From Podarcis melisellensis (taxonomy: Eukaryota), in the NCBI GenBank assembly GCA_964234715.1, contig OZ174284.1: 64,000 bases of DNA. One strand, given 5' to 3'. Within the stretch, counting starts at the first letter, position 1. Every line of letters starts with the position of its first letter. Under the pieces are notes generated by a model. It saw nothing but the letters and a program-made list of their open reading frames with translations, had not been told where the DNA came from and searched no databases. The position numbers and the translations under genes were made by a program. Positions 2,921 to 46,608 of the stretch are shown here, in pieces.

Positions 2921-3070
2921 NNNNNNNNNNNNNNNNNNNNNNNNNNNNNNNNNNNNNNNNNNNNNNNNNNNNNNNNNNNNNNNNNNNNNNNNNNNNNNNN
3001 NNNNNNNNNNNNNNNNNNNNNNNNNNNNNNNNNNNNNNNNNNNNNNNNNNNNNNNNNNNNNNNNNNNNNN
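2921..3070. other. Assembly gap (150 N)
   Basis: Run of N. Confidence 0.99.
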
Positions 3071-7002: not shown

Positions 7003-7228
7003 CAGTGGTACCTCGGGTTAAGTACTTAATTCGTTCCAGAGGTCCGTACTTAACCTGAAACTGTTCTTAACCTGAAGCACCACTTTAGCTAATGCGGCCT
7101 CCCGCTGCCGCTGCACCGCCGGAGCACAATTTCTGTTCTCAACCTGAAGCAAAGTTCTTAATCTGAAGCACTATTTCTGGGTTAGCGGAATCTGTAACCT
7201 GAAGCGTATGTAACCCAAGGTACCACTG
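7003..7228 (+). mobile_element. Tc1/mariner-pogo (Tigger-like) MITE, family A
   Basis: TIRs cagtggtacct / aggtaccactg, TA on both flanks; many near-identical copies in the window. Confidence 0.9.
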
Positions 7229-9091: not shown

Positions 9092-9761
9092 GACTGAATT
9101 AAACAAACCCCCTCCCTGTTGAACTTCAGGTGCCTGATGAAGACTTTTCTATTTCAGCAGCAATTTTATCTGTTTTTATAATGGATTTGAATTCCTCTTA
9201 TTCTTTGTATGATTTCTTTTTTATGTACTCCACTTAGAAATTCTGCATATTAAGGTGCAAATCTGTCTCTTAAATACTAAGGACTAAGCCTTTAACGTGG
9301 CAGGTGCTGTCCCGTGATACCCCTTGCCAGTAGAGGTTCAACAGGAATAATCCCTGCCTACTTTTAGACATCTTCTGAAAAATAGGGTTATTCAAACAGG
9401 CCTCTGAAATGTGAATTTATTTTTACCAACTAGTATTTATCGATTTTTCTGTTGATTATATTGTAAAGTTGTTCTTTTTATGCTGTATATCATCTTGCTA
9501 CATTTTTATGAAAGTGCAGTCTATAAGTATGTAATGTAATGTATTACAATACAATATATCCCATAGTTTGGCTCTAAGTTATCCTAGTAAGTTTGATCCT
9601 GGGAAGAGATTTTGACCAAGCACTTCCAAGGTCACACTCTTATGCATGATAGATCATGGCTACAAAGCCCCCTTTTTTGTACGTGTCTCCCACGGATTGT
9701 ATATACATGTATATAGCTTATATACATTGGTATTCAGAAGTCCATTGAGTTCAATGATCTT

Positions 9762-10124
9762 AAAGGTAAAGGTAAAGGGACCCCTGACCATTAGGTCCAG
9801 TCGTGGCCGACTCTGGGGTTGCGGCGCTCATCTCGCTTTATTGGCCGAGGGAGCTGGTGTACAGCTTCCGGGTCATGTGGCCAGCATGACTAAGCCGCTT
9901 CTGGCAAACCAGAGCAGCACACGGAAACGCCGTTTACCTTCCCGCCGGAGTGGTACCTATTTATCTACCGGTACTTGCACTTTGACGTGCTTTCAAACTG
10001 CTAGGTTGGCAGGAGCAGGGACCGAGCAATGGGAGCTCAGCCCATCACCGGGATTCGAACTGCCGACCTTCTGATCGGCAAGTCCTAGGCTCTGTGGTTT
10101 AACCCACAGCACCACCCGCATCCC
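9762..10124 (-). mobile_element. Sauria SINE, full length
   Basis: tRNA-like head with B box ggttcgaatcc-like motif, (ACCTTT)n tail, imperfect TSD caatgatctta/caatgagctta. Confidence 0.92.
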
Positions 10125-11025: not shown

Positions 11026-13003
11026 AATATATATATATATTTTTTAAATATTTATTAGGGTTTTTACAGAAAAAAAGAAAACATCCAATAACAATATACA
11101 ATATTACTTTGTTTAACAAAATTTCATATCCTCTTTGAACTTCCTCACGCCTCCCACTCCCATTTGCATCATTAATAAATTTTGTCCAGCAAATTATCAT
11201 CTTATTTCCAAATTTTAAAACCGCTTAATTACAATAAAATTGTTCTCCTACAAATTTATTTTTCTTAATCTCTCTTCTCATCAGTTCCTGATCTATTTTA
11301 GTGATGGCCAATTATTTATAACTAAGCATCTTTTTTAACATTCTGATAAATCATAATATTTTTGTAGATAAATCTTGAATTTCTTCCAGTCTTCTTCCAT
11401 CCTCTCTTCTCCCAGGTCTCGGATTCTGCCAGTCATCTCCGCCAGTTGCATATAGTCCATCAATTGCGTCTGCCATTCTTCCAGTGTGGGTAGATCTTGA
11501 GTTTTCCAATTCTTAGCGAGTAGTATCCTTGCTGCTGTTGTCGCATACATGAAAAATGTTCTATCTTTCTTTAACACCTTCTGGTCGACAATGCCCAGAA
11601 GAAAGGCCTCTAGTTTCTTGGTAAAGGTATACTTAAACACCTTTTTCAACTCATTATATATCATTTCCCAGAAGGCCTTCACCTTAGGGCAAGTCCACCA
11701 GAGGTGGTAGAATGTTCCTTCATTTTCCTTACATTTCCAGCATTTATTGTCTGACGAATGGTATATTTTAGCAAGTTTAACTGGGGTCATGTACCATCTG
11801 TATATCATTTTCATTACATTTTCTTTCAAAGCATTACATGCAGTAAAGTTCAACCCAGTGGTCCACAACCTTTCCCAATCCTCAAACATAATATTATGCC
11901 CAATATCCTGTGCCCATTTTATCATAGCCGATTTAACCATTTCGTCTTGTGTATTCCATTTCAACAGCAAGTTATACATTCTTGAAAGTACCTTAGTCTT
12001 AGGTTCTAACAGTTCTGTTTCCAACTTCGATTTCTCCACCTGGAATCCTAACTTTTTGTCACTTTTAAAAGTTTCCTTAATCTGAGCGTAGTGTAACTAG
12101 TCTCGCACTTTATCCTTCATTTTCTCCATACTCTGCAATTTCCAATTATCTCCGTCTTTTTCTAGCAGTTCCCAATATTTTGGCCAGTAGGCTTCCATAT
12201 TGGTTCCTTTTCGGGCCTTAGCTTCCAAAGGTGAAAGCCACCTTGGTGTTTTATTTTCCAGTAAGTCTTTATATTTAGTCCAGACATTAAACACTGCTTT
12301 TCTGACAATATGGTTCTTAAAGGCCTTATTGATCTTAACTTTATCATACCACAAATATGCATGCCAACCAAAAGCATTGTTGTAACCTTCAAGATCTAAC
12401 ACATCAGTGTCCTCAAGAAGTAGCCAATCCTTTAGCCAGCAGAAGGCTGCGGCTTCATAGTACAACCTTAAGTCTGGCAGGGCAAAGCCCCCTCTTTCCT
12501 TTGCATCTGTTAATATCTTAAACTTAATTCTGGGCTTTTTGCCCTGCCAGACAAATTTGGAAATATCTCTCTGCCACCTCCGGAAACACTCTGCTTTGTC
12601 CACAATTTGCAATGTTTGAAACAAAAACAACATCTTTGGCAGCACATTCATCTTAATTGCAGCAATTCGGCCTAGTAAAGAAAGCTTCAGCTTTGCCCAA
12701 CTTTCCAAGTCTCTCTTAATTTCCGACCAACATTTTTCATAATTGTCTTTAAATAGACTCAGATTTTTAGCTGTTATATTTACCCCTAGGTACTTTACCC
12801 TTTTCACTAGTGATAATTCTGTTTCTCTCTGAAACCGTTCTGACTCTGTGTCTGTCATATTTTTCCCTAGCACCTTCGTTTTTTTATTTAACTTAAATCC
12901 TGCCACCTGACCAAAATCATTTATCAATTGTAATACTCTTTTCGTACTAGATTCTGGCTCCTGCAATGTCAATACTAGGTCATCTGCGAAGGCTTTTAGT
13001 TTA

Positions 13004-15179
13004 CAGTGGTGCCTCGCAAGACGAAATTAATTCGTTCCGCAAGTCTCTTCGTCTTGCGAGTTTTTCGTCTTGCGATGCACGGTTTTCCATAGGAATGCAT
13101 TGAAAATCAATTAATGCGTTCCTATGGAAAACGCCTTCCCCCGACCTCTTCTGGCGGGTGGCATTTTAAAATCACCCGGGACAGCGGAGGACTTCTCCGC
13201 TGTCCGGGGCGATTTAAAAGCCCCTGGGAAGGCAGGCAGGGGGGACAAAGGCTTTCCCGCCCCGCCGCTCGGCTTCGGGACATCGTTCCGATGCCGGGCG
13301 GCGGGGGGAGGCTTTCTCGCCCGGCCGCCCGGCTTCGGGACATCCTTCCGATGCCGGGCGGTGGGGGGAGGCGTTCCTGCCCCACCGCCCGGCATCGGAA
13401 CGATGCCCCGAAGCCGGGCGGTGGGGGGAGGCGTTCCTGCCCCACCGCCCGGCATCGGGACGATGCCCCGAAGCCGGGCGGCGGGGGGAGGCGTTCCTGC
13501 CCCACCGCCCGGCATCGGGACGATGCCCCGAAGCCGGGCGGCGGGGGGAGGCGTTCCTGCCCCACCGCCCGGCATCGGGACGATGCCCCTAAGCCGGGCG
13601 GCTGAGGGAGGCGTTCCTGCCCCACCGCCCGGCATCGGGACGATGCCCCGAAGCCGGGCGGTTGGGGGAGGCGTTCCTGCCCCACCGCCCGGCATCGGGA
13701 CGATGCCCCGAAGCCGGGCGGCGGGGGGAGGCGTTCCTGCCCCACCGCCCGGCATCGGGACGATGCCCCGAAGCCGGGCGGCTGGGGGAGGCGTTCCTGC
13801 CCCACCGCCCGGCATCGGGACGATGCCCCGAAGCCGGGCGGCTGGGGGAGGCGTTCCTGCCCCACCGCCCGGCATCGGGACGATGCCCCGAAGCCGGGCG
13901 GCTGGGGGAGGCGTTCCTGCCCCACCGCCCGGCATCGGGACGATGCCCCGAAGCCGGGCGGCTGGGGGAGGCGTTCCTGCCCCACTTCCCGGCATCGGGA
14001 CGATGCCCCGAAGCCGGGCGGCTGGGGGAGGCGTTCCTGCCCCACCGCCCGGCATCGGGACGATGCCCCGAAGCCGGGCGGCTGGGGGAGGCGTTCCTGC
14101 CCCACCGCCCGGCATCGGGACGATGCCCCGAAGCCGGGCGGCGGGGGGAGGCGTTCCTGCCCCACTTCCTGGCATCGGGACGATGCCCCGAAGCCGGGCG
14201 GCGGGGGGAGGCTTTCCCGCCCGGCCGCCCGGCTTCGGGACATCGTTCCGATGCCGGGCGGCGGGGGGAGGCTTTCCCGCCCCGTCGCCCGGCATCGGGA
14301 CATGGTTCCGATGCCGGGCGGCGGGGGGAGGCTTTCCCGCCCCGTCGCCCGGCATCGGGACATGGTTCCGATGCCGGGCGGCGGGGGGAGGCTTTCCCGC
14401 CCCGTCGCCCGGCATCGGGACATGGTTCCGATGCCGGGCGGCGGAGGGAGGCTTTCCCGCCCCGTCGCCCGGCATCGGGACATGGTTCCGATGCCAGGCG
14501 GCGGGGGGAGGCTTTCTCGCCCCGTCGCCCGGCATCAGGACGATGCCCCGAAGCCGGGCGGCGAGGGGAGGCTTTCCCGCCCCGTCGCCCGGCATCGGGA
14601 CATGGTTCCGATGCCGGGCGGCGAGGGGAGGCTTTCTCGCCCCGTCGCCCGGCATCGGGACGATGCCCCGAAGCCGGGCGGCGGGGGGAGGCGTTCCTGC
14701 CCGGCCGCCCTGCATCGGGACGATGCCCCGATGCCGGGCGGCGGGGGGAGGCTTCAAAAGCCATCCGGGGGCTTTTAAATCGCCCCGGACAGTCCCGGGG
14801 CGATTTAAAAGCCCCCGGTTAGGCAGGCAGGGGGGGCAAAAGTCTTTGCCCCCCCTGCCTGCCTTCAAAAGCCGTCCGGGATAGCGGGAAGCGCTTCCCT
14901 GCTATCCCGGACCGCTTTTAAAATGCTGGCGGTGGGGAGCAAAGCCTTTCGCCCCCGCCGGCCTTCCTGGACCTCTTCTGAAGTCCGGAGGGGGGAAAAA
15001 GGCTTTGCTCCCCACCGCCAGCATTTAAAAAAAGGTCCCCGAGATTTCCCTATGGGCTTTCGTCTTGCGATGCAAGCCCATAGGGAAAATCGTCTAGCGA
15101 AGCGTCGCAAAACCCGAAAAACCCTTTCGTCTTGCGGGTTTTTCGTCTTGCGAGGCATTCGTCTTGCGGGGCACCACTG
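13004..15179. mobile_element. Non-autonomous Tigger/pogo-like TIR transposon (2176 bp) containing a minisatellite
   Basis: TIRs cagtggtgcctcgcaagacgaa / ttcgtcttgcggggcaccactg; TA TSD at 13002-13003 and 15180-15181; repeated subterminal ttcgtcttgcg; no transposase ORF. Confidence 0.92.
13250..14760. repeat. 60-bp GC-rich palindromic minisatellite, ~25 copies
   Basis: Unit ccgcccggcatcgggacgatgccccgaagccgggcggcggggggaggcgttcctgcccca repeats in register with the 60-column lines. Confidence 0.97.
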
Positions 15180-15728
15180 TATATTGTTTCACTCCGACCT
15201 GGATCCCCTGCACCAGCCGGTCCCCTCTAATCAAATTCAAGAGCACCTCCAGAACTGAGATAAATAACAAAGGGGAAATCGGGCAGCCTTGTCGTGTTCC
15301 TTTTTCAATTTTAAATTCTTCTGTTACCACATTGTTAACTATCAATTTAGCTTTTTGTTCTGAATATATTGCATCGATCCCATTTTCAAAACCCCGCCCC
15401 ACTCCCATTTCTTTTAGATTTCCCTTCATAAATTTCCAAGAGATGTTGTCAAAGGCCTTCTCCGCGTCTATAAATATCAGTACTACTTTAGTGTTTATAT
15501 CTGTTTGCAAAAGTTCCAAAATGTCAATAATGTTCCTTGTGTTTGCAAACATGTGTCTGCCCGGGAGAAAGCCGGCCTGGTCTTTATGAATTACTTCATT
15601 TAAAACTCTTTTAAGTCTGCATGCTAAAACATCAGCAAATATTTTGTAATCCACATTTAGAAGGGAGATGGGGCGGTAGTTCTTAAGTTGTGTTTTTTCA
15701 GTTTCTGATTTTGGTATCAACGTGATAA

Positions 15729-16235
15729 AAGCATATTTTACATAAACTAAACCATTCAGTATTCCATTATTACATCCATCAAATCTTATTTACACTGTTG
15801 AATTTGTCTTAATGCTGCTCACGTTTTCAAATGTACACAATTTCCTCCATATATTCAATAAACATTTTCCAATCTTCTTTAAATGTATGTTCTTCTTGTT
15901 TTCTTATTCTATATGTTAGGTCTGCCACAAGCTGTACACATTCCATCAATTTAAGTTGCCATTCTTCTTTAGTTGGGGCTTTGCTTGTTTACCATTTTGG
16001 GGCAAACAAAACACAGGCCACAGTAGTGGCTTACATAAATAACCTTTTTTGATACCTGGGAATTTCTGTCTGAATTATCCCCAACAACAAGGACTCTGGG
16101 TTTTTTGGGGGGGAAGTACTTCTAAGCATTTTTTTCAATTCATTATGAATTATTTCCCAATGCTCTTTTACCCTTTTACAGGTCCACCACATATGATAGA
16201 ATGTACCCTCAGTCTCATTGCATCTCCAGCAATGG
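15729..16235 (-). mobile_element. Older L1 3' fragment (ORF2 C-terminus and part of the 3' UTR), different family
   Basis: CWRCNETEGTFYHMWWTCKRVKEHW...LLGII is homologous to, but diverged from, the C-terminus at 11335-12039; frameshifted. Confidence 0.85.
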
Positions 16236-16399
16236 CAGGGCTGGCCCAAGACATTTTGGCACCTGATGTGACAAAAATAGTGCCCCCCTCCTCACCAAAG
16301 AAGAAGGGGTGGGTGAAGATCTACATCAGGAACACGAGGGAAATAAAAGTATCTCAGTCAGTAGAACATGAGATTCTTAATCTCAGGGTAATGTGTCCA

Positions 16400-16495
16400 A
16401 GCCCCACGTTGGGCAGAGGATCCTTGCATGGCAGTGGGCTGGACTAGATCATCCTCCTGGTCTCTTCCAGCTCTACAGTCCTATGATTCTATGAT
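16400..16495 (+). mobile_element. CR1 3' end fragment
   Basis: ggactagat...ttccagctctacagtcctatgattctatga tail; a similar tail occurs at ~17230-17275. Confidence 0.6.
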
Positions 16496-16663: not shown

Positions 16664-17038
16664 CAGTGGTACCTCTGGTTACGTACTTAATTCGTTCCGG
16701 AGGTCCGTTCTTAACCTGAAACTGTTCTTAACCTGAAGCACCACTTTAGCTAATGGGGCCTCCTGCTGCTGCCACGCCACCGCCGCGTGATTTCTGTTCT
16801 CATCCTGAAGCAAAGTTCTTAACCCGAGGTACTATTTCTGGGTTAGCGGAGTCTGTAACCTGAAGCATATGTAACCTGAAGCGTATTTAACCCAAGGTGG
16901 CTTAGTCATGCTGGCCACGTGACCTGGAAGCTGTACACCGGCTCCCTCGGCCAATAAAGCGAGATGAGCGCCGCAACCCCAGAGTCGGCCGTGACTGGAC
17001 CTAATGGTCAGGGGTCCCTTAACCTTTACATACCACTG
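16664..17038 (+). mobile_element. Tigger-like MITE family A with interrupted right TIR
   Basis: Same family as 7003-7228; right TIR split as aaggt|SINE|taccactg. Confidence 0.88.
16899..17030 (+). mobile_element. Sauria SINE 3' fragment nested in the MITE TIR
   Basis: ggcttagtcatgctggcc...ggtcaggggtcccttaacctttac matches the 3' end of the other SINE copies. Confidence 0.88.
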
Positions 17039-18204
17039 TACAGAATCTCTGATGCCAAGGCAATCCCCTCAGGACCACAATAGAAGAGGAAAGCATTAAG
17101 TTTCTTCTCCCTCCTGTTTCAATACTGATAATTGTCAGCTCCATCCCCACCCTGAGGATATTATCTACATTTATTATTATGACTTGAGTGTCAGGATTGT
17201 GGGTTAGAGCCCCATGTTTCGCAAGAGATTCTTCCTCATGGTCCCTTCCAACTCTACAGTTCTATGATTCTATGAAGTACAATTCTCAGCCTCTCTCTCT
17301 CCTAATAGATATATATATTTCTATACTTGCCTTTGTTTGTTTACTTTTGACTCCTTACTATTTTACCTACAAAATTAAAATAGTAAAAAGTAATAATAAA
17401 AATTGAAGTACATCACTCTTCTTTCCACATTCTGCCCACACCAAGTGAGGATATAAATATTCAGATATTCCTATAGTTCTGATAAATCTATATTCATTTG
17501 CTCATATGCACATGCGACACAGCATATGTGACTGTTGTTGTTGTTGTTGTTTACAACTTTGCATCTTAACAAGAGGATAGCCACAATCTGTGTAATATTT
17601 TCACTTTCTGAGTCAGCTGAGAATTAGCACTTGCTGTTCATAGTTATTCAGAGTTTTGATATATTTTTTTAAAAAAAACAACAGACTTTTCCCTTCATGA
17701 TTTATTTCAAAGTCCTACATTTCACAAGTTTATTATGTACCAATATCCATGGTTACTTGTGCTCTCATTTCCTGTGACAACAATAATCCTATTTTCTTGT
17801 CTGGCTGTAGATTGAATCTCCAAGCATGCACTATGCATCTTTATAGCAAGTCACCAGCTGAGTTTTGTTCTGCTGTAAAATATTTTGATTACTTAATAAA
17901 GTTCAAAATAAGATAAATAAAATGGACCAATGTTTTGAGTTAAGGTTATCCTTTGACAACTAAATGAACAACAAAGAACACGAGTTGTTCATGGGGGGGG
18001 GCATATTCTGGGAAACAGTATTCCTGGAAAATCGGAAGGAAAAAACCAAAGCACCAAATTCCAGTTAACAAATGATTCAGATTTCAGTAACAGATGCTCT
18101 TATAGTCAAATGTGCACTGCAACAATATATTGTGGGGGGTTTTTTGTCAGTTCTTACATGTTTGTTAAAAACACAGCCAGAATCTTTCCAAATTTCTAAC
18201 CCAG

Positions 18205-19330: not shown

Positions 19331-22127
19331 ACTAAGTAGCAAGCATCTTGTGGTAGTGAATCAGCAAAACTCGGTATCAGCAGTACAGATGTCTTGGTTT
19401 TTTAAGGTTTACGCCCCATTTGCAGTATTCTGAAAGATCGAATGTAAAGGTTTCGAAATGCCAACATACATAATCATGTGATAAAGTGTAAGACATGTTG
19501 CTGCAAGTGAAACCACACTTTCAAAATTCCTTCCAGGAACCATAAAATGATAAGCTAGTCGTCTTGTAAGAGTTGTGTGCCTGTTCTAGTCAGTAAGCAG
19601 ATGGGCATAGCAGAAGTAGAATTAGTCCAATAAAATGCGTCATACTCTAAGAGATTTGACAAGTGCACCTCATGTGCTTTACTGTAAAGTGTCTGTTACT
19701 GTAAACAATCACTCATATTCCTGTAGCCATGATGGAGTGCATATGACTGTTCTTTTTTAATTGCATGGAATGCATTTGGTCAGCGGACGAGAAACATATT
19801 TGGGCTGAGGAAAGTGCCTGGAAAAAAGGACCTAAGATAAAGATCCCTGCTGCATCAGAACAACCTGGTGCCCCCCAGATGTTCCCCATTCCTTCCACCA
19901 TTGACCGTGCTGGTTGGAGCTGATGGGAATTTGAGTTAGCATCATTTGAAAGGTCACAAGTTCACAACTCTGCTCTATATATAGCATGGCAAATTCCATT
20001 TCGATCACACTTTAAATGCAGATTTTATTAGGCTTCAATGAACTTCTGCCAGCAAAGCATCCCGAATGAAAGAAGTCTTTATCTGCTGATTGGAAGAAAT
20101 TAGTTACATTGGAGAGGGGGCAGGAGATCACACTTGGGAGCGTGACCTACATCTTAACAGAGAGGTCCGCGTCCGCTGAGGAACACTTCTGCAAACTTTC
20201 ATGATCATCGGCATCTCCATGGCAATTACTTTAATTGCTCACATGCTAAAGAATGATGCTGGGGGGGGGGGTATGTTCAGGGGACATTTTAAACTTCCCC
20301 TTAATGGAATTTAACAGTTGGATGTAAAGTGTCATCACTATGTGGCCAGCCAGCTCTCTGCAGACCACACATTTCCAAAGTGCTGTGTGCAGGTAGATGG
20401 TGCAAACAAGCAATGATGCCTTCTAGCAATCTTTTTAATAAGTTTGATTCTCCCCTATATATTTTTCAAACCAAACCTGGAATCCAATTGAATTTGCTTC
20501 CTTGGAACTCCTTAGTGGATTCTGTCAGCAATATGGATAAACTCCCTGAGGGCCCCAAAGGCAAATTAGAGGAACCTCCCCCCCCCCTTTTGGATGGTTT
20601 TGGTTTTTCTTTTCTTATCAGTTACATGCTGTCTCAAAGGAAGCCCTGAGGGGTATGTGCTAAAGACTAGCCAGAATGCAGAAGGTCATCCGCTCAATCC
20701 CTAGCTTTTCTAATGAGAAGGATTCCAGGTACCAAGGATGGAAATACCTCTTTCTAAGACCTTGGACAGCTCCTGTGAGTTACAGCGACAGTACTGGTCA
20801 AGATGAGCCAGTATAAACTATCTTCATATGTTTCCCTTGTAGCAAAAGCAGTTTCATCCAGAACAGAAAGTGGGCGGAAATGTTTTATGCATACAGTGTT
20901 CTTTTATCTTAGTCTGCCTGTATGTCATAGTCCATGAAGCTTTTGAATACATAACAAAATATGAATCTTACAAATATGTGCATAATGTTGCAACAGAAGA
21001 GGGAATTTTAGATGTCGTCATCTGCCTAGGTAAGAACATGTCGTGATAGTACTTTTAAGGAAACCAAGCAGTTTTCAAATAATGAAATGTTTGCTTGCAA
21101 TGTTTACTGACAAGGGCAGCTGCTAAAATAGCAGACTCATTTAGTCAAACATCTAATTGGTTGCCTGTTTTGGATGTGTCCCAGTTATTTAACTTACTAT
21201 CCGATGTATGTTTCAGTAGATCAAAAGCCTGCATTTAAATAAAATAAAAAGATTTATAGCAAGGGCAGAATCAAAGTTGTCTTGACTTATGCTAATAAGG
21301 AATGAGACTGGTCAATGTTTCCAGATTTAAGCCTTTTAGTATTTGCATTTGTATTTTGCATCTCTTCTACTGATTTGAAAAGGCAATAAGGCTGGAATCT
21401 AATACCCACTGAACTTGGCAGGGCATAATTCTGAGTAAACATGCATATTGTTGCATGCCACCCCACTCTCCGAAGGGTGTGAGATTCCAGGAGTTTGAGG
21501 CACTTACCCAGGGTTTGGTTTCCTCAGAATGAGGGACAACAGAGACTGTGGTGTCTTTAGGATATATGGCTTATTTTTACACACACACACACCCTAAGCC
21601 TGTGATGGAGGGGCTCATAGCATCAACATCCCAAGAGAGCCTTGCTTCTCCCACAGCCACAGCCTTGGAATCCAGCAGAAATCGGGCATGGCTTTGTTTT
21701 GCAACTGCCCAGCCTGCAGCTTTGCTTCTGCCTTCTAGCTCACAGCTCTGGCCTTTGTCTTTCTAAATACCAGTTGAGTTGAAGGAGGGGAGCGGTGGAA
21801 CCCATTTGCCTTGAGGACACAGAGCCACTTCCTTTCTTACCATAATGGCCCATTACCTCACCAGGAAGACAGCCTGGCTGTTCCAGGAATTGAATCGGTG
21901 CTGGATCCAGGAATTAAAAAGGGGCACAGGCATACAACTCATAAGGATATGGTCGCACTGCTTATCTCTTGTGCCTATGTCCACTTCGCAAGCTTCCCAC
22001 AAGCATCTGGTTGGCGACTGTGAGAATAATGATGGAGTGGATGGGCCATTGGCCTGATCCAGCCAGCTTGTCCTACGTTCTTATTTTTTCAGTGCAACCT
22101 GCCGTTACCCCTCTCTTGTAGCAGTAT

Positions 22128-22478
22128 AAAGGTAAAGGTAAAGGGACCCCTGACCATTAGGTCCAGTCACGGACGACTCTGGGGTTGCGGTGCTCATCTC
22201 GCTTTATTGGCCGAGGGAGCCAGCGTACAGCTTCCGGGTCATGTGGCCAGCATGACTAAGCCGCTTCTGGCGAACCAGAGCAGCGCACGGAAACGCCGTT
22301 TACCTTCCTGCCAGAGTGGTACCTATTTATCTACTTGCACTTTGATGTGCTTTTGAACTGCTAGGTTGGCAGGAGCAGGGACCGAGCAACGGGAGCTCAC
22401 CCTATCATGGGGATTCAAACCGCCGACCTTCTGATCGGCAAGTCCTAGGCTCTGTGATTTAACCCACAGCACCGTCCC
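22128..22478 (-). mobile_element. Sauria SINE, near full length
   Basis: Very similar to 9762-10124; imperfect flanks gcagtata/gcaatata. Confidence 0.92.
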
Positions 22479-25971: not shown

Positions 25972-26560
25972 CTTATTTTCTTCTCTGGGCATCCTCATTT
26001 GCCTGGCCCTGCTCTCACCTCCTGAAGCCTTCCCCCCTATAACCAACCCTTCTTCGTCATCCCGCTCCTAAATCTGCTGTTCCGCTGAGCATCACTCCCT
26101 GCACCCTCGTATCAAAATCTCTCAGCAGCACCTACACGGACAGCAGCATCCTTTCGCCCTTATCCTTAGAAGCTACTGGCGCAGGCGAGAGCGCCAAGGG
26201 AACTCCGGGTAGGGCAGGAGCTTCAGTCGGGCTTCAATTTGGCACTGGGCATGTGCGAGGGGTCTGTGCCCGCGCCAGGGAGGCGGAGCCAAGGCTGCCG
26301 CGCGCCGCCTTTGCACCTGCAGTAATGTGTCACCGCGAATAGATGGGCGGGCGGGCGCTGCCGAGCGCGCCGCTTGCCTCGCCTCGTCGTTCTCCGGGGT
26401 GTCGCCGCGGAGTGTCCCCCCCCCCCTCCAGCCGCCACACGCCACACGCCTCCTTCCGCGCCCGCGGCTCCTTTGCAGCTGTGAGGCTGCCGCCGCTTTC
26501 CCAACCCGACGAAGCCCTTCCCTGACCCAGCAACGTTTCCCTCGTTGCCAGGCTCGAGAG
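25972..26560 (-). other. Putative first exon of a leftward transcript
   Basis: Consensus donor AAG|GTAAGT at 25972/25971 at the left edge of the CpG island; TSS position is approximate. Confidence 0.45.
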
Positions 26561-27300
26561 TGACATCACCCGCGACCAATCGCTGCCCGGCGCTCTCGCG
26601 CTCCGCCACCGCCCCCCGGCCCCCTCCCGCTCTTGCCCCAATCAGCTCGGTTCGCCCACAGCCCCCTCAGGCAAAGGCGGGCAACTGTCAAGGCGTTTTG
26701 GGGGGTGGACTTCGCTGAGGAGAAGGGAGGGAGGTGGGCGCGCGCGCAGGGGGCAAGGCAGCCAAGCCTAGCCAAGCCAAGCCAAGCAGGGCAGGGCGCT
26801 CCCAGGTGCTTGCGGCTGAACGCGGGAAACCTCCAGCTGCGCAGCCCCCTCCCGCCCGCCGCACCTCGCGCGCGTTTTTCCCTCAGCAGCGCGGTCCCCG
26901 CACAGGTAGGACTTGGCTTCTTATTGTTATCCGCACCCAGGGAGATTTCGAAGAGCTGGGTTGGGTGTTTAAATCCACCTCAGGGGTGGTGAGGGGGGTG
27001 GGCTGGATAGGTTGGGGGGAGGGGGGCTGCTGCCTGCTGCCGCGAGCTTTTCTGAGGGAGTGTCGCTCTGAGGAAAGGAGATGTGCGCGCCTCCAAAAGC
27101 GTCCCCAGGTTTATGGGTCGTTTTCAGTCGCCCTCTTCTGGGGAGGCAGAAGCTGGCCGAGTTGCCGCCGCGCGCGCAACAGAAGGATGAGGCAAGTTTC
27201 CTCGGGGAAGCTCCGCCGCCCAAGCAGCCCGCTCGATTGAGCAGCAGCACTGCAATACCCAGAGCAATTAGCTCGGCTGGAAGGACGCAGCCGGTTTGGG
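26150..27300. promoter_or_regulatory. CpG island, probable bidirectional promoter
   Basis: Non-repetitive, GC- and CpG-rich; CCAAT at 26576 and 26638, TGACATCA at 26561-26568, GC boxes, GCGCAGGCG (NRF1-like) at ~26179; splice donors face outward on both strands. Confidence 0.85.
26660..26905 (+). other. Putative non-coding first exon of a rightward transcript
   Basis: Lies downstream of two CCAAT boxes; donor CAG|GTAGGA at 26905/26906; start is approximate. Confidence 0.45.
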
Positions 27301-30558: not shown

Positions 30559-30764
30559 CAGTGGTACCTCAGGTTAAGAACTTAATTCATTCCAGAGGTC
30601 CGTTCTTAACCTGAAACTGTTCTTAACCACTTTAGCTAATGGGCCCTCACGCTGCCGCCGCACGATTTCTGTTCTCATCTTGAGGTAAAGTTCTTAACCC
30701 AAGGTACTATTTCTGGGTTAGTGGCGTCTGTAACCTGAAGCGTCTGTAACCCGAGGTACCACTG
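30559..30764 (+). mobile_element. Tigger-like MITE family A
   Basis: cagtggtacctc...gaggtaccactg, TA flanks. Confidence 0.9.
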
Positions 30765-32655: not shown

Positions 32656-32897
32656 CAGTGGTACCTCGGTTTAAGAACCGAGCCGGTTTAAGAAGGATTG
32701 GGTTTACAAACTTTGCAAAACCGGAAATAGTGTCTCGGTTTGAGAACTTTGCCTTGGTCTAAGAATGGAATCTGAACAGTGGAAGGACACCAGCAGCGGG
32801 AGGCCTCATTAGGGAAAGCACACCTTGGTTTAAGAATGGTTTTGGTTTTAGAACGGACATCCGAAATGGATTATGTTTGTAAACCAAGGTACCACTG
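32656..32897. mobile_element. Tigger-like MITE, related family with ggtttaagaa subterminal repeats
   Basis: TIRs cagtggtacct / aggtaccactg followed by TA. Confidence 0.85.
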
Positions 32898-43774: not shown

Positions 43775-44016
43775 CAGTGGTACCTCGGGTTACAGATGCT
43801 TCAGGTTACAGACGCTTCAGGCTACAGACTCAGCTAACCCAGAAATAGTATCTCAGGTTAAGAACTTTGCTTCAGGATGAGAACAGAAATCATGCTCCGG
43901 CGGCACGGTGGCAGCGGGAGGCCCCATTAGCTAAAGTGGTACCGCAGGTTAAGAACAGTTTCAGGTTAAGAACGGACCTCCAGAACGAATTAAGTTCTTA
44001 ATCTGAGGTACCACTG
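43775..44016 (-). mobile_element. Tigger-like MITE family A
   Basis: TIRs and TA flanks; inverted relative to the 7003 copy. Confidence 0.9.
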
Positions 44017-45362: not shown

Positions 45363-45577
45363 CAGTGGTACCTCGGGTTACATACGCTTCAGGTTACAGA
45401 CTCCACTAACCCAGTACCTTGGTTTAAGGACTTTGCTTCAGGATGAGAACAGAAATCGTGCTCTGGCGGCGCGGCAAGGAGGTCCCATTAGCTAAAGTGG
45501 TGCTTCAGGTTAAGAACAGTTTCAGGTTACGAACGGACCTCCAGAACGAATTAAGTACTTAACGTGAGGTACCACTG
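45363..45577 (-). mobile_element. Tigger-like MITE family A
   Basis: TIRs and TA flanks. Confidence 0.9.
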
Positions 45578-46366: not shown

Positions 46367-46608
46367 CAGTGGTACCTCTGGTTACAAACTTAATTTGTCC
46401 CAGAGGTCCGTTCTTAACCTGAAACCGTTCTTAACCAGAGGTACCACTTTTGCTAATGGGGCATCCCGCTGCCGCTGTGCCGTCGGTGAGCCATTTCTGT
46501 TCTCATCTTGAGGTAAAGTTCTTAACCCGAGGTACTATTTCTGGGTTAGCGGAGTCTGTAACCTGAAGTGTTTGTAGCCCAAGGTGTTTGTAACTTGAGG
46601 TACCACTG
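46367..46608 (+). mobile_element. Tigger-like MITE family A
   Basis: TIRs cagtggtacctc / gaggtaccactg. Confidence 0.9.

Follow-up and report, generated by a model that had tools for sequence, protein, structure and literature searches.

A probable Tigger-like transposon carrying a 60-bp palindromic minisatellite in Podarcis melisellensis

How does a 1.5-kb array of GC-rich, palindromic repeat units come to lie within a degraded copy of an L1-type retrotransposon? The question is raised by a 64,000-nt stretch of Podarcis melisellensis contig OZ174284.1 (assembly GCA_964234715.1), which we refer to as the window and to which all coordinates refer. The answer that we favor, with a probability of roughly 85%, is that positions 13004-15179 hold a single copy of a transposon that moves by cut and paste, encodes no protein, and is non-autonomous; it would belong to the Tc1/mariner-pogo superfamily, most likely as a Tigger-like member, and one of its hairpin modules would have been amplified. 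An earlier interpretation, made from the letters and open reading frames (ORFs) of the window and referred to here as the sequence-only reading, had proposed a transposon of this kind.

The element is 2176 bp long in total, or 672 bp without the array. At its left end (13004-13025, plus strand) is a 22-bp terminal inverted repeat (TIR) composed of a 13-nt core, CAGTGGTGCCTCG, and a 9-nt motif, CAAGACGAA; the right TIR (15158-15179, minus strand) differs from it by one T/C mismatch. The 22-nt end sequence has two occurrences in the 64 kb, inverted relative to each other, where chance would give 0, and no further TIR matches were found in the window at up to three mismatches. A TA dinucleotide adjoins the left end (13002-13003) and another the right end (15180-15181), and restoration of the host reading frame (see below) identifies the pair as a target-site duplication. 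The 22-bp TIRs and TA duplication described in the sequence-only reading are therefore real features of the locus.

The host sequence shows that these ends belong together. On the minus strand, an L1-type reverse transcriptase lies on either side of the insertion, as indicated by Pfam RVT_1 and the reading frame. The part upstream of the insertion (15181-15540) ends in GVKQY and matches profile positions 63-143 of 205 with significance (E = 2e-13). The part downstream (12643-13002) begins with KLKAFADD and matches positions 151-205 of 205, with an E-value of 5.4e-05 and a score of 23.4 bits that is under the 29.6-bit cut-off. The two segments are consecutive along the profile, and excising 13004-15181 (the element plus one TA) fuses ...GVKQY with KLKAFADD... 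in one frame over the junction. Because removal of the element and one TA restores the reverse transcriptase frame, all 2176 bp entered at the TA as a single unit, or else a shorter unit did so and the array grew afterwards. The same restored frame rules out a genomic minisatellite lying by chance between two unrelated ends, and it upholds the earlier claim of a non-coding TIR/TA transposon. The host L1 copy has 11 stops in ~800 codons and is CpG-depleted, and is thus older than the insertion. The degraded L1-type sequence extends over 11338-16400 on the minus strand, with RVT_1 on both sides of the insertion. Upstream of the reverse transcriptase is a Cys/His-rich ORF (16034-16291) that resembles the C terminus of L1 ORF2, although it has no Pfam match, and that may be part of another L1 fragment next to this one.

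The greater part of the element is the array. Tandem Repeats Finder (TRF) reports a single array at 13249-14752, with a period of 60, 25.1 copies, 93% matches, and no indels, in agreement with the ~25 tandem 60-bp palindromic units counted in the sequence-only reading. Comparison of the 25 units reveals a common plan of spacer, 14-nt arm, core, and complementary arm. Folding of single units gives -24 to -30 kcal/mol, and there are two registers, the second of which is centered on the spacer. The core occurs in several states. It is flipped in the units at 13250, 13310, and 14210; forward in 14 units (13370-14209); and chimeric, forming a perfect palindrome, in five (14270-14509 and 14570). Two further units, at 14510 and 14630, have a forward core with the other spacer type, and the unit at 14690 is a variant of the forward form. 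Compared with the reverse-complemented forward core, the flipped core has 2 differences in 25 positions, and the chimeric core joins a forward left half to a flipped right half, resulting in an uninterrupted 22-bp stem. A CpG-to-CpA change in the forward-type left arm is common to 14 of the 14 units of 13370-14209, so this block was amplified after the change occurred. Identical consecutive units are found twice, four at 13730-13969 and two at 14270-14389, and the run of four shows recent local duplication.

The array is 77% GC and its period is exactly 20 codons, which is why long open frames run through it. A coding gene was rejected, as no Pfam family was present on the long array ORFs. A word search with the 586-aa array ORF, which might have picked up other copies miscalled as genes, returned 5802 candidates, none of them significant. 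A known RNA family was also rejected, because Rfam gives only generic miRNA-hairpin look-alikes far under their gathering scores (the best are mir-1304, with 45.7 of 90 bits, and mir-3155, with up to 38.9 of 70; the rest fall below half the gathering score). A G-quadruplex array was rejected given that the canonical G3+N1-7 motif is absent from both strands of the element. In annotation, neither the 1.5-kb array nor any of the long open frames in it is to be taken for a gene or a promoter island.

The arms on either side of the array are built from hairpins as well. Folded as single-stranded DNA, the left arm (13004-13260) reaches -78.1 kcal/mol (z = -10.1); for the right arm (14740-15179) the value is -186.5 kcal/mol (z = -19.0), and in neither case did any shuffled sequence fold as well. 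The sequence-only reading had described the interior as a chain of stem-loops, and these folds bear it out; the three stem-loops that it quoted are at 13082-13132, 13179-13205, and 15046-15089. Altogether, the two non-array arms resolve into nine stem-loop domains. On the left, a module with a 20-bp stem and an 11-nt loop (13082-13132) is followed by a long imperfect hairpin domain (13133-13252), which includes the perfect 11-bp stem-loop 13179-13205 and has TTTAAAA linkers at 13165 and 13213. To the right of the array are a module with a 24-bp stem (14765-14818), an intact module with a 20-bp stem (14821-14864), a module of 23 pairs (14867-14919), and a long module of 45 pairs (14921-15026). 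Throughout the interior, the GC-rich hairpin modules are joined by TTTAAAA or TTCAAAA linkers, eight of which were listed.

It is the arrangement of these modules that indicates where the array began. A direct repeat, with copies at 13204-13262 and 14795-14854 (both plus strand; 52 of 59 positions identical, with one gap), brackets the array near the approximate coordinates given in the sequence-only reading. The end of the left copy forms the left arm of a hairpin module; the array replaces the right arm and starts exactly where that arm would be expected. The complete counterpart of this half-module is the intact module at 14821-14864. Because the array takes the place of the right arm of one module, and the twin of that module is intact, the array is bracketed by a direct repeat.

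From this layout a sequence of events can be proposed. An autonomous relative would provide, in trans, a transposase that binds the end repeats. The interior can be read as a string of GC-rich hairpin modules set apart by TTTAAAA-type linkers, and one module could have given rise to the 60-bp array when its short direct repeats slipped during replication or exchanged unequally. Since each unit can form a hairpin in either of two registers, intrastrand template switching would also have flipped some cores and made others chimeric and perfectly palindromic. Slippage or unequal exchange, like template switching, is an established mechanism. Stem-loop replication models have been put forward for the growth of repeats inside MITEs, miniature transposable elements with inverted repeats (PMC3879986), minisatellites have been traced to slippage between short flanking repeats (PMC6947457), and template switching that generates perfect hairpins has been described (10.1101/2023.04.19.537475).

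The timing of the growth could differ from the order just given. There is a substantial chance, somewhat short of even, that the element moved with a much shorter array, or with a single module, and that most of the 25 units arose at the locus after insertion; the family would then spread an expansion-prone seed, not ready-made variable number tandem repeats (VNTRs). The identical neighboring units in the two runs described above point to recent local duplication, as this alternative would have it. On the other hand, the array is already differentiated, with three core states and with flipped-core units at both of its ends, and this differentiation needs more history than the near-intact ends of the element suggest. 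Post-insertion growth is compatible with a Tigger-like element whose hairpin module was amplified, and it refines that explanation instead of replacing it.

The assignment of the element to a Tigger-like group comes from its ends. We found a TA target-site duplication, short TIRs, and no transposase coding capacity, as is characteristic of non-autonomous members of the Tc1/mariner-pogo superfamily. Tigger elements have TA duplications and ~20-bp TIRs (PMC9219625), and here too a TA target and a TIR of about 20 bp accompany end sequences similar to those of accepted Tigger-like elements. Specifically, MITE_109 of Rhodnius prolixus, listed as "Tigger-like" with TA and CAGTGGTACCTCGGTTTTCGAA, belongs to a family in which Tigger homology has been reported (PMC4678618), and the end of our element is identical to the MITE_109 TIR at 12 of 13 positions in the terminal core and 17 of 22 overall. 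Like other Tigger-like MITEs (MITE_109, human MER2-type, Anolis TcMar-N), the element has a TA duplication and ~22-bp TIRs starting CAGTGGT.CCTCG, is non-coding, and is presumably mobilized in trans. The Tigger/pogo-like label given in the sequence-only reading stands with respect to the end type, which matches published Tigger-like elements; the transposase partner that it implies was not found in the window. Neither Pfam searches of the long ORFs nor a motif scan in six frames revealed a transposase-like ORF in the 64 kb.

There is a small but real chance that a Tc1- or mariner-type transposase mobilizes these ends, in which case the superfamily would be right and the Tigger/pogo-like label wrong. 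The superfamily as a whole shares TA duplications and short TIRs. That no partner was found in the window leaves room for this, as does the finding that 17 of 17 non-autonomous TcMar families in Anolis were without similarity to the single autonomous family found there (PMC3014272). However, the terminal core is nearly identical (12 of 13) to the end of a published Tigger-like MITE whose family contains Tigger homology, and non-autonomous families with Tigger3/4-like ends, and with no identifiable partner, do exist in Anolis (PMC3014272). The Tigger-like assignment is the likelier of the two.

The subterminal regions resemble those of smaller elements nearby. The 11-mer TTCGTCTTGCG has seven exact copies in the 64 kb, all of them within the element and two inside the TIRs, where 0.19 would be expected by chance; the only two matches to it outside the element in the window each have one mismatch. 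The sequence-only reading had seen about seven copies near the ends, and this count proved correct. The left subterminal region (13026-13080, plus strand) holds TTAATTCGTTCC, which is common to the small MITEs described below, and two direct TTCGTCTTGCG copies (13048-13058 and 13064-13074) that pair with the TIR motif to form a terminal hairpin, 13009-13080. In the right subterminal region (15034-15157, plus strand), the hairpin 15046-15089 carries TTCGTCTTGCG in its loop (15059-15069), and three direct motif copies spaced by 16 bp follow at the right end (15126-15136, 15142-15152, and a third in the TIR). The right-end copies (15124-15172) read nTTCGTCTTGCG(G/A)G(G/T). This resembles the CENP-B box in its TTCG...CGGG flavor, although the spacing is shorter by two bases, and we take it as a lead for a pogo-type transposase binding site.

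At least six ordinary elements of ~230 bp (~206-242 bp) with CAGTGGTACCTCG ends, belonging to at least two subfamilies, are present in the window (7003-7228, 30559-30764, 32656-32897, 43775-44016, 45363-45577, and 46367-46608). Four of the six are flanked by TA on both sides, and the other two have one decayed side. Additional single ends of small MITEs are found at 16664, 49802, and 50058. Alignment of the ends shows a layout common to the large element and the small MITEs. On the 5' side this comprises TA, the 13-nt core, a 9-10-nt motif (M), TTAATTCGTTCC, ~9 nt, and two inverted copies of M; on the 3' side it comprises two to three tandem copies of a unit made of CCTCG followed by M. Only M differs, being CAAGACGAA in the large element and GGTTAAGAAC or GGTTACAGAC in the small MITEs, so that the subterminal motif of the element, CGCAAGACGAA, sets it apart from the neighboring small-MITE families. 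M and its repeats may be transposase-binding sites, and the families may use related transposases, judging from the pattern of the ends. For other copies or module fragments of the large element, the window contains only chance matches of 12-14 nt and the shared TTAATTCGTTCC. The 22-nt TIR pattern had 0 matches in metagenome, prokaryote-genome, and viral contigs, and the 31-nt unit core had 0 in metagenome contigs; these collections are not lizard DNA, and zero was the expected result for each.

Assembly is error-prone for GC-rich palindromic arrays, and the length of this one, or part of its structure, could in principle be an artefact of a hard-to-sequence palindromic repeat. We consider this improbable, as the 25 units keep an exact period and show 0% indels, the unit variants are ordered in blocks, and the junctions with both arms and with the L1 flanks are clean.

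The composition of the element sets it apart from its surroundings. Its GC content is 0.71 and its CpG observed/expected ratio (o/e) is 0.97, whereas the remainder of the window has a CpG o/e of 0.29, and the 5-kb flanks (the adjacent 10 kb) one of 0.31. This is a property of the arms as well as the array: the ratio is 0.95 in the non-array arms and 0.68 in the small MITEs (individually 0.58-0.78), against the background of 0.29. All 14 CpGs across the seven motif copies are intact (14 of 14), as is the CpG of both TIR cores, which has been lost in most small-MITE ends of the window. Within unit types, the rate of change is 2.6% at CpG positions and 1.9% at others, and there is therefore no deamination excess. 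The sequence-only reading, which called the CpGs almost undecayed, is borne out on this point. This state of the CpGs fits a young insertion.

By composition (>200 bp, GC ≥0.5, CpG o/e ≥0.6) the element qualifies as a CpG island across its 2176 bp, with the passing 200-bp windows starting from 13050 (the first) to 15100 (the last). It also has 46 GC-box cores (GGGCGG/CCGCCC), compared with 11 in the other 62 kb. We regard the CpG-island-like composition as what may be a passive outcome of GC-rich cargo and young age (or germline hypomethylation), with no designed function. That the array is instead a working element kept by selection, be it a regulatory module, a CpG island free of methylation, or a producer of hairpin small RNAs, is very unlikely: the island-like composition over ~2.1 kb, the excess of GC-box cores, and the strong hairpins formed by the units would suit such a role, but the element is located in a dead L1 copy ~11 kb from the one ordinary CpG island of the window, all Rfam families are below threshold, and cargo plus youth explain the composition. 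The ordinary-looking island (26150-27250) has a GC content of 0.67, a CpG o/e of 0.81, and no tandem structure. It probably marks the promoter or first exon of a gene, but the 168-aa ORF within it (26734-27237) has no Pfam match.

Several points weigh against the conclusion that this is a Tigger-like transposon with an amplified hairpin module, and keep its probability below certainty. Only one copy of the large element lies within the window. The Tigger label is drawn from the similarity of the ends. At 2176 bp the element is not "miniature," given that strict usage of the term MITE implies a few hundred base pairs. Germline hypomethylation or GC-biased conversion, and not youth, could lie behind the high CpG content. 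Finally, the slippage and template-switch steps are read from the unit pattern and should be taken as a plausible history of the array.

How unusual, then, is such an element? The sequence-only reading had singled it out as the best candidate for an undescribed system, and this claim found no support in a comparison with the literature: tandem-repeat MITEs, hairpin-driven array growth, and "mobile CpG islands" have all been published (PMC3879986, PMC6947457, PMC6928650). Transposons that carry or disperse tandem repeats include pearl/DTC84, DINE-1, Xstir, and Tetris, and rice minisatellites provide a further case (PMC3879986, PMC6947457, PMC4079207). In contrast to a typical MITE, the element is ~10 times longer, and unlike other Tigger-like MITEs it has an interior that is unrelated to transposase and consists entirely of GC-rich hairpin modules and the 1.5-kb minisatellite.

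The closest parallels in architecture are pearl/DTC84 of bivalves, DINE-1/PERI of Drosophila, and Xstir of Xenopus, which likewise have left and right "cassette" ends and a central array of variant units. As in pearl/DTC84/DINE-1, we found flanking modules with inverted repeats to the left and to the right of a central tandem array. The likeness extends to the palindromic units, which in those elements were proposed as copy-number hotspots and for which stem-loop growth models exist (PMC3879986, PMC6947457). However, those elements have ~150-bp units in at most ~5 copies, AA as the putative target duplication, an adjacent tetranucleotide microsatellite, and a possible Helitron affinity, whereas the element described here has 60-bp units x25, a TA target, 77% GC, fully palindromic units, and flipped cores. 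Membership in the pearl/DINE-1 lineage was rejected because the target is TA, not AA, and TRF finds no microsatellite beside the array (criteria from PMC3879986).

Two other comparisons are instructive. Like the foldback-type Tetris of Drosophila virilis (PMC4079207), the element is a DNA transposon and a source of tandem repeats and of extensive secondary structure. Foldback elements, however, have long TIRs made of tandem repeats, whereas this element has 22-bp TIRs and a central array; a foldback element was rejected given that, past the first 22 bp, the two ends show no further inverted similarity and differ in arrangement. Hominid SVA retrotransposons have been given the name "mobile CpG islands" (PMC6928650), and like SVA, the element is a mobile element with a GC-rich VNTR that deposits CpG-island-like DNA at new sites. 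The mode of movement is different, in that SVA is mobilized by L1 as a retrotransposon, bearing a poly(A) tail and making variable target duplications, and the element is of the TIR/TA cut-and-paste type. Our literature search found no paper describing the family of this element in lacertids. Overall, the element looks unusual but is of a known kind, a repeat-carrying transposon that works as pearl/DINE-1 and foldback elements do but has a Tigger-like chassis. It stands out for an interior of 71% GC made up wholly of hairpins and for a 25-unit palindromic array that has flipped and chimeric cores.

What the locus means depends largely on whether it has relatives. The sequence-only reading had envisaged a recently active family that would seed GC- and CpG-rich VNTRs across the genome. 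As a single copy, the element matters mainly for repeat annotation. If the family proves to be abundant and young, it would be a vertebrate case of hairpin cargo growing into minisatellites inside a cut-and-paste transposon, in which the flipped and "corrected" palindromic cores serve as footprints of template switching, and it would show how insertions bring CpG-island-like, structure-forming DNA into CpG-poor regions. A bolder proposal is that a currently mobile Tigger-like lacertid family spreads ready-made, cruciform-prone, CpG-island-like VNTRs that stay unmethylated, as a counterpart of primate SVA. We find this highly doubtful; if it were true, each insertion would be a new regulatory or fragile site, with the number of units and the orientation of the cores varying between individuals.

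Elsewhere in the window, a repeated segment encoding a near-identical peptide (…VKVKGPLTIRSS.GRLWGCGAHLALLAEGA.VQLPGHVAS…) is found at 9616-10071 (plus strand), 16835-17068 (minus strand), and 22033-22353 (plus strand). The first of these copies (9616-10071) has no Pfam match, and the segment is probably a dispersed repeat family. Two of the copies make up an inverted pair (16899-17029 and 22132-22262) of 131 nt at 95% complementarity, with its members 5.1 kb apart. A run of 150 N at 2921-3070 marks an assembly gap or a masked stretch.

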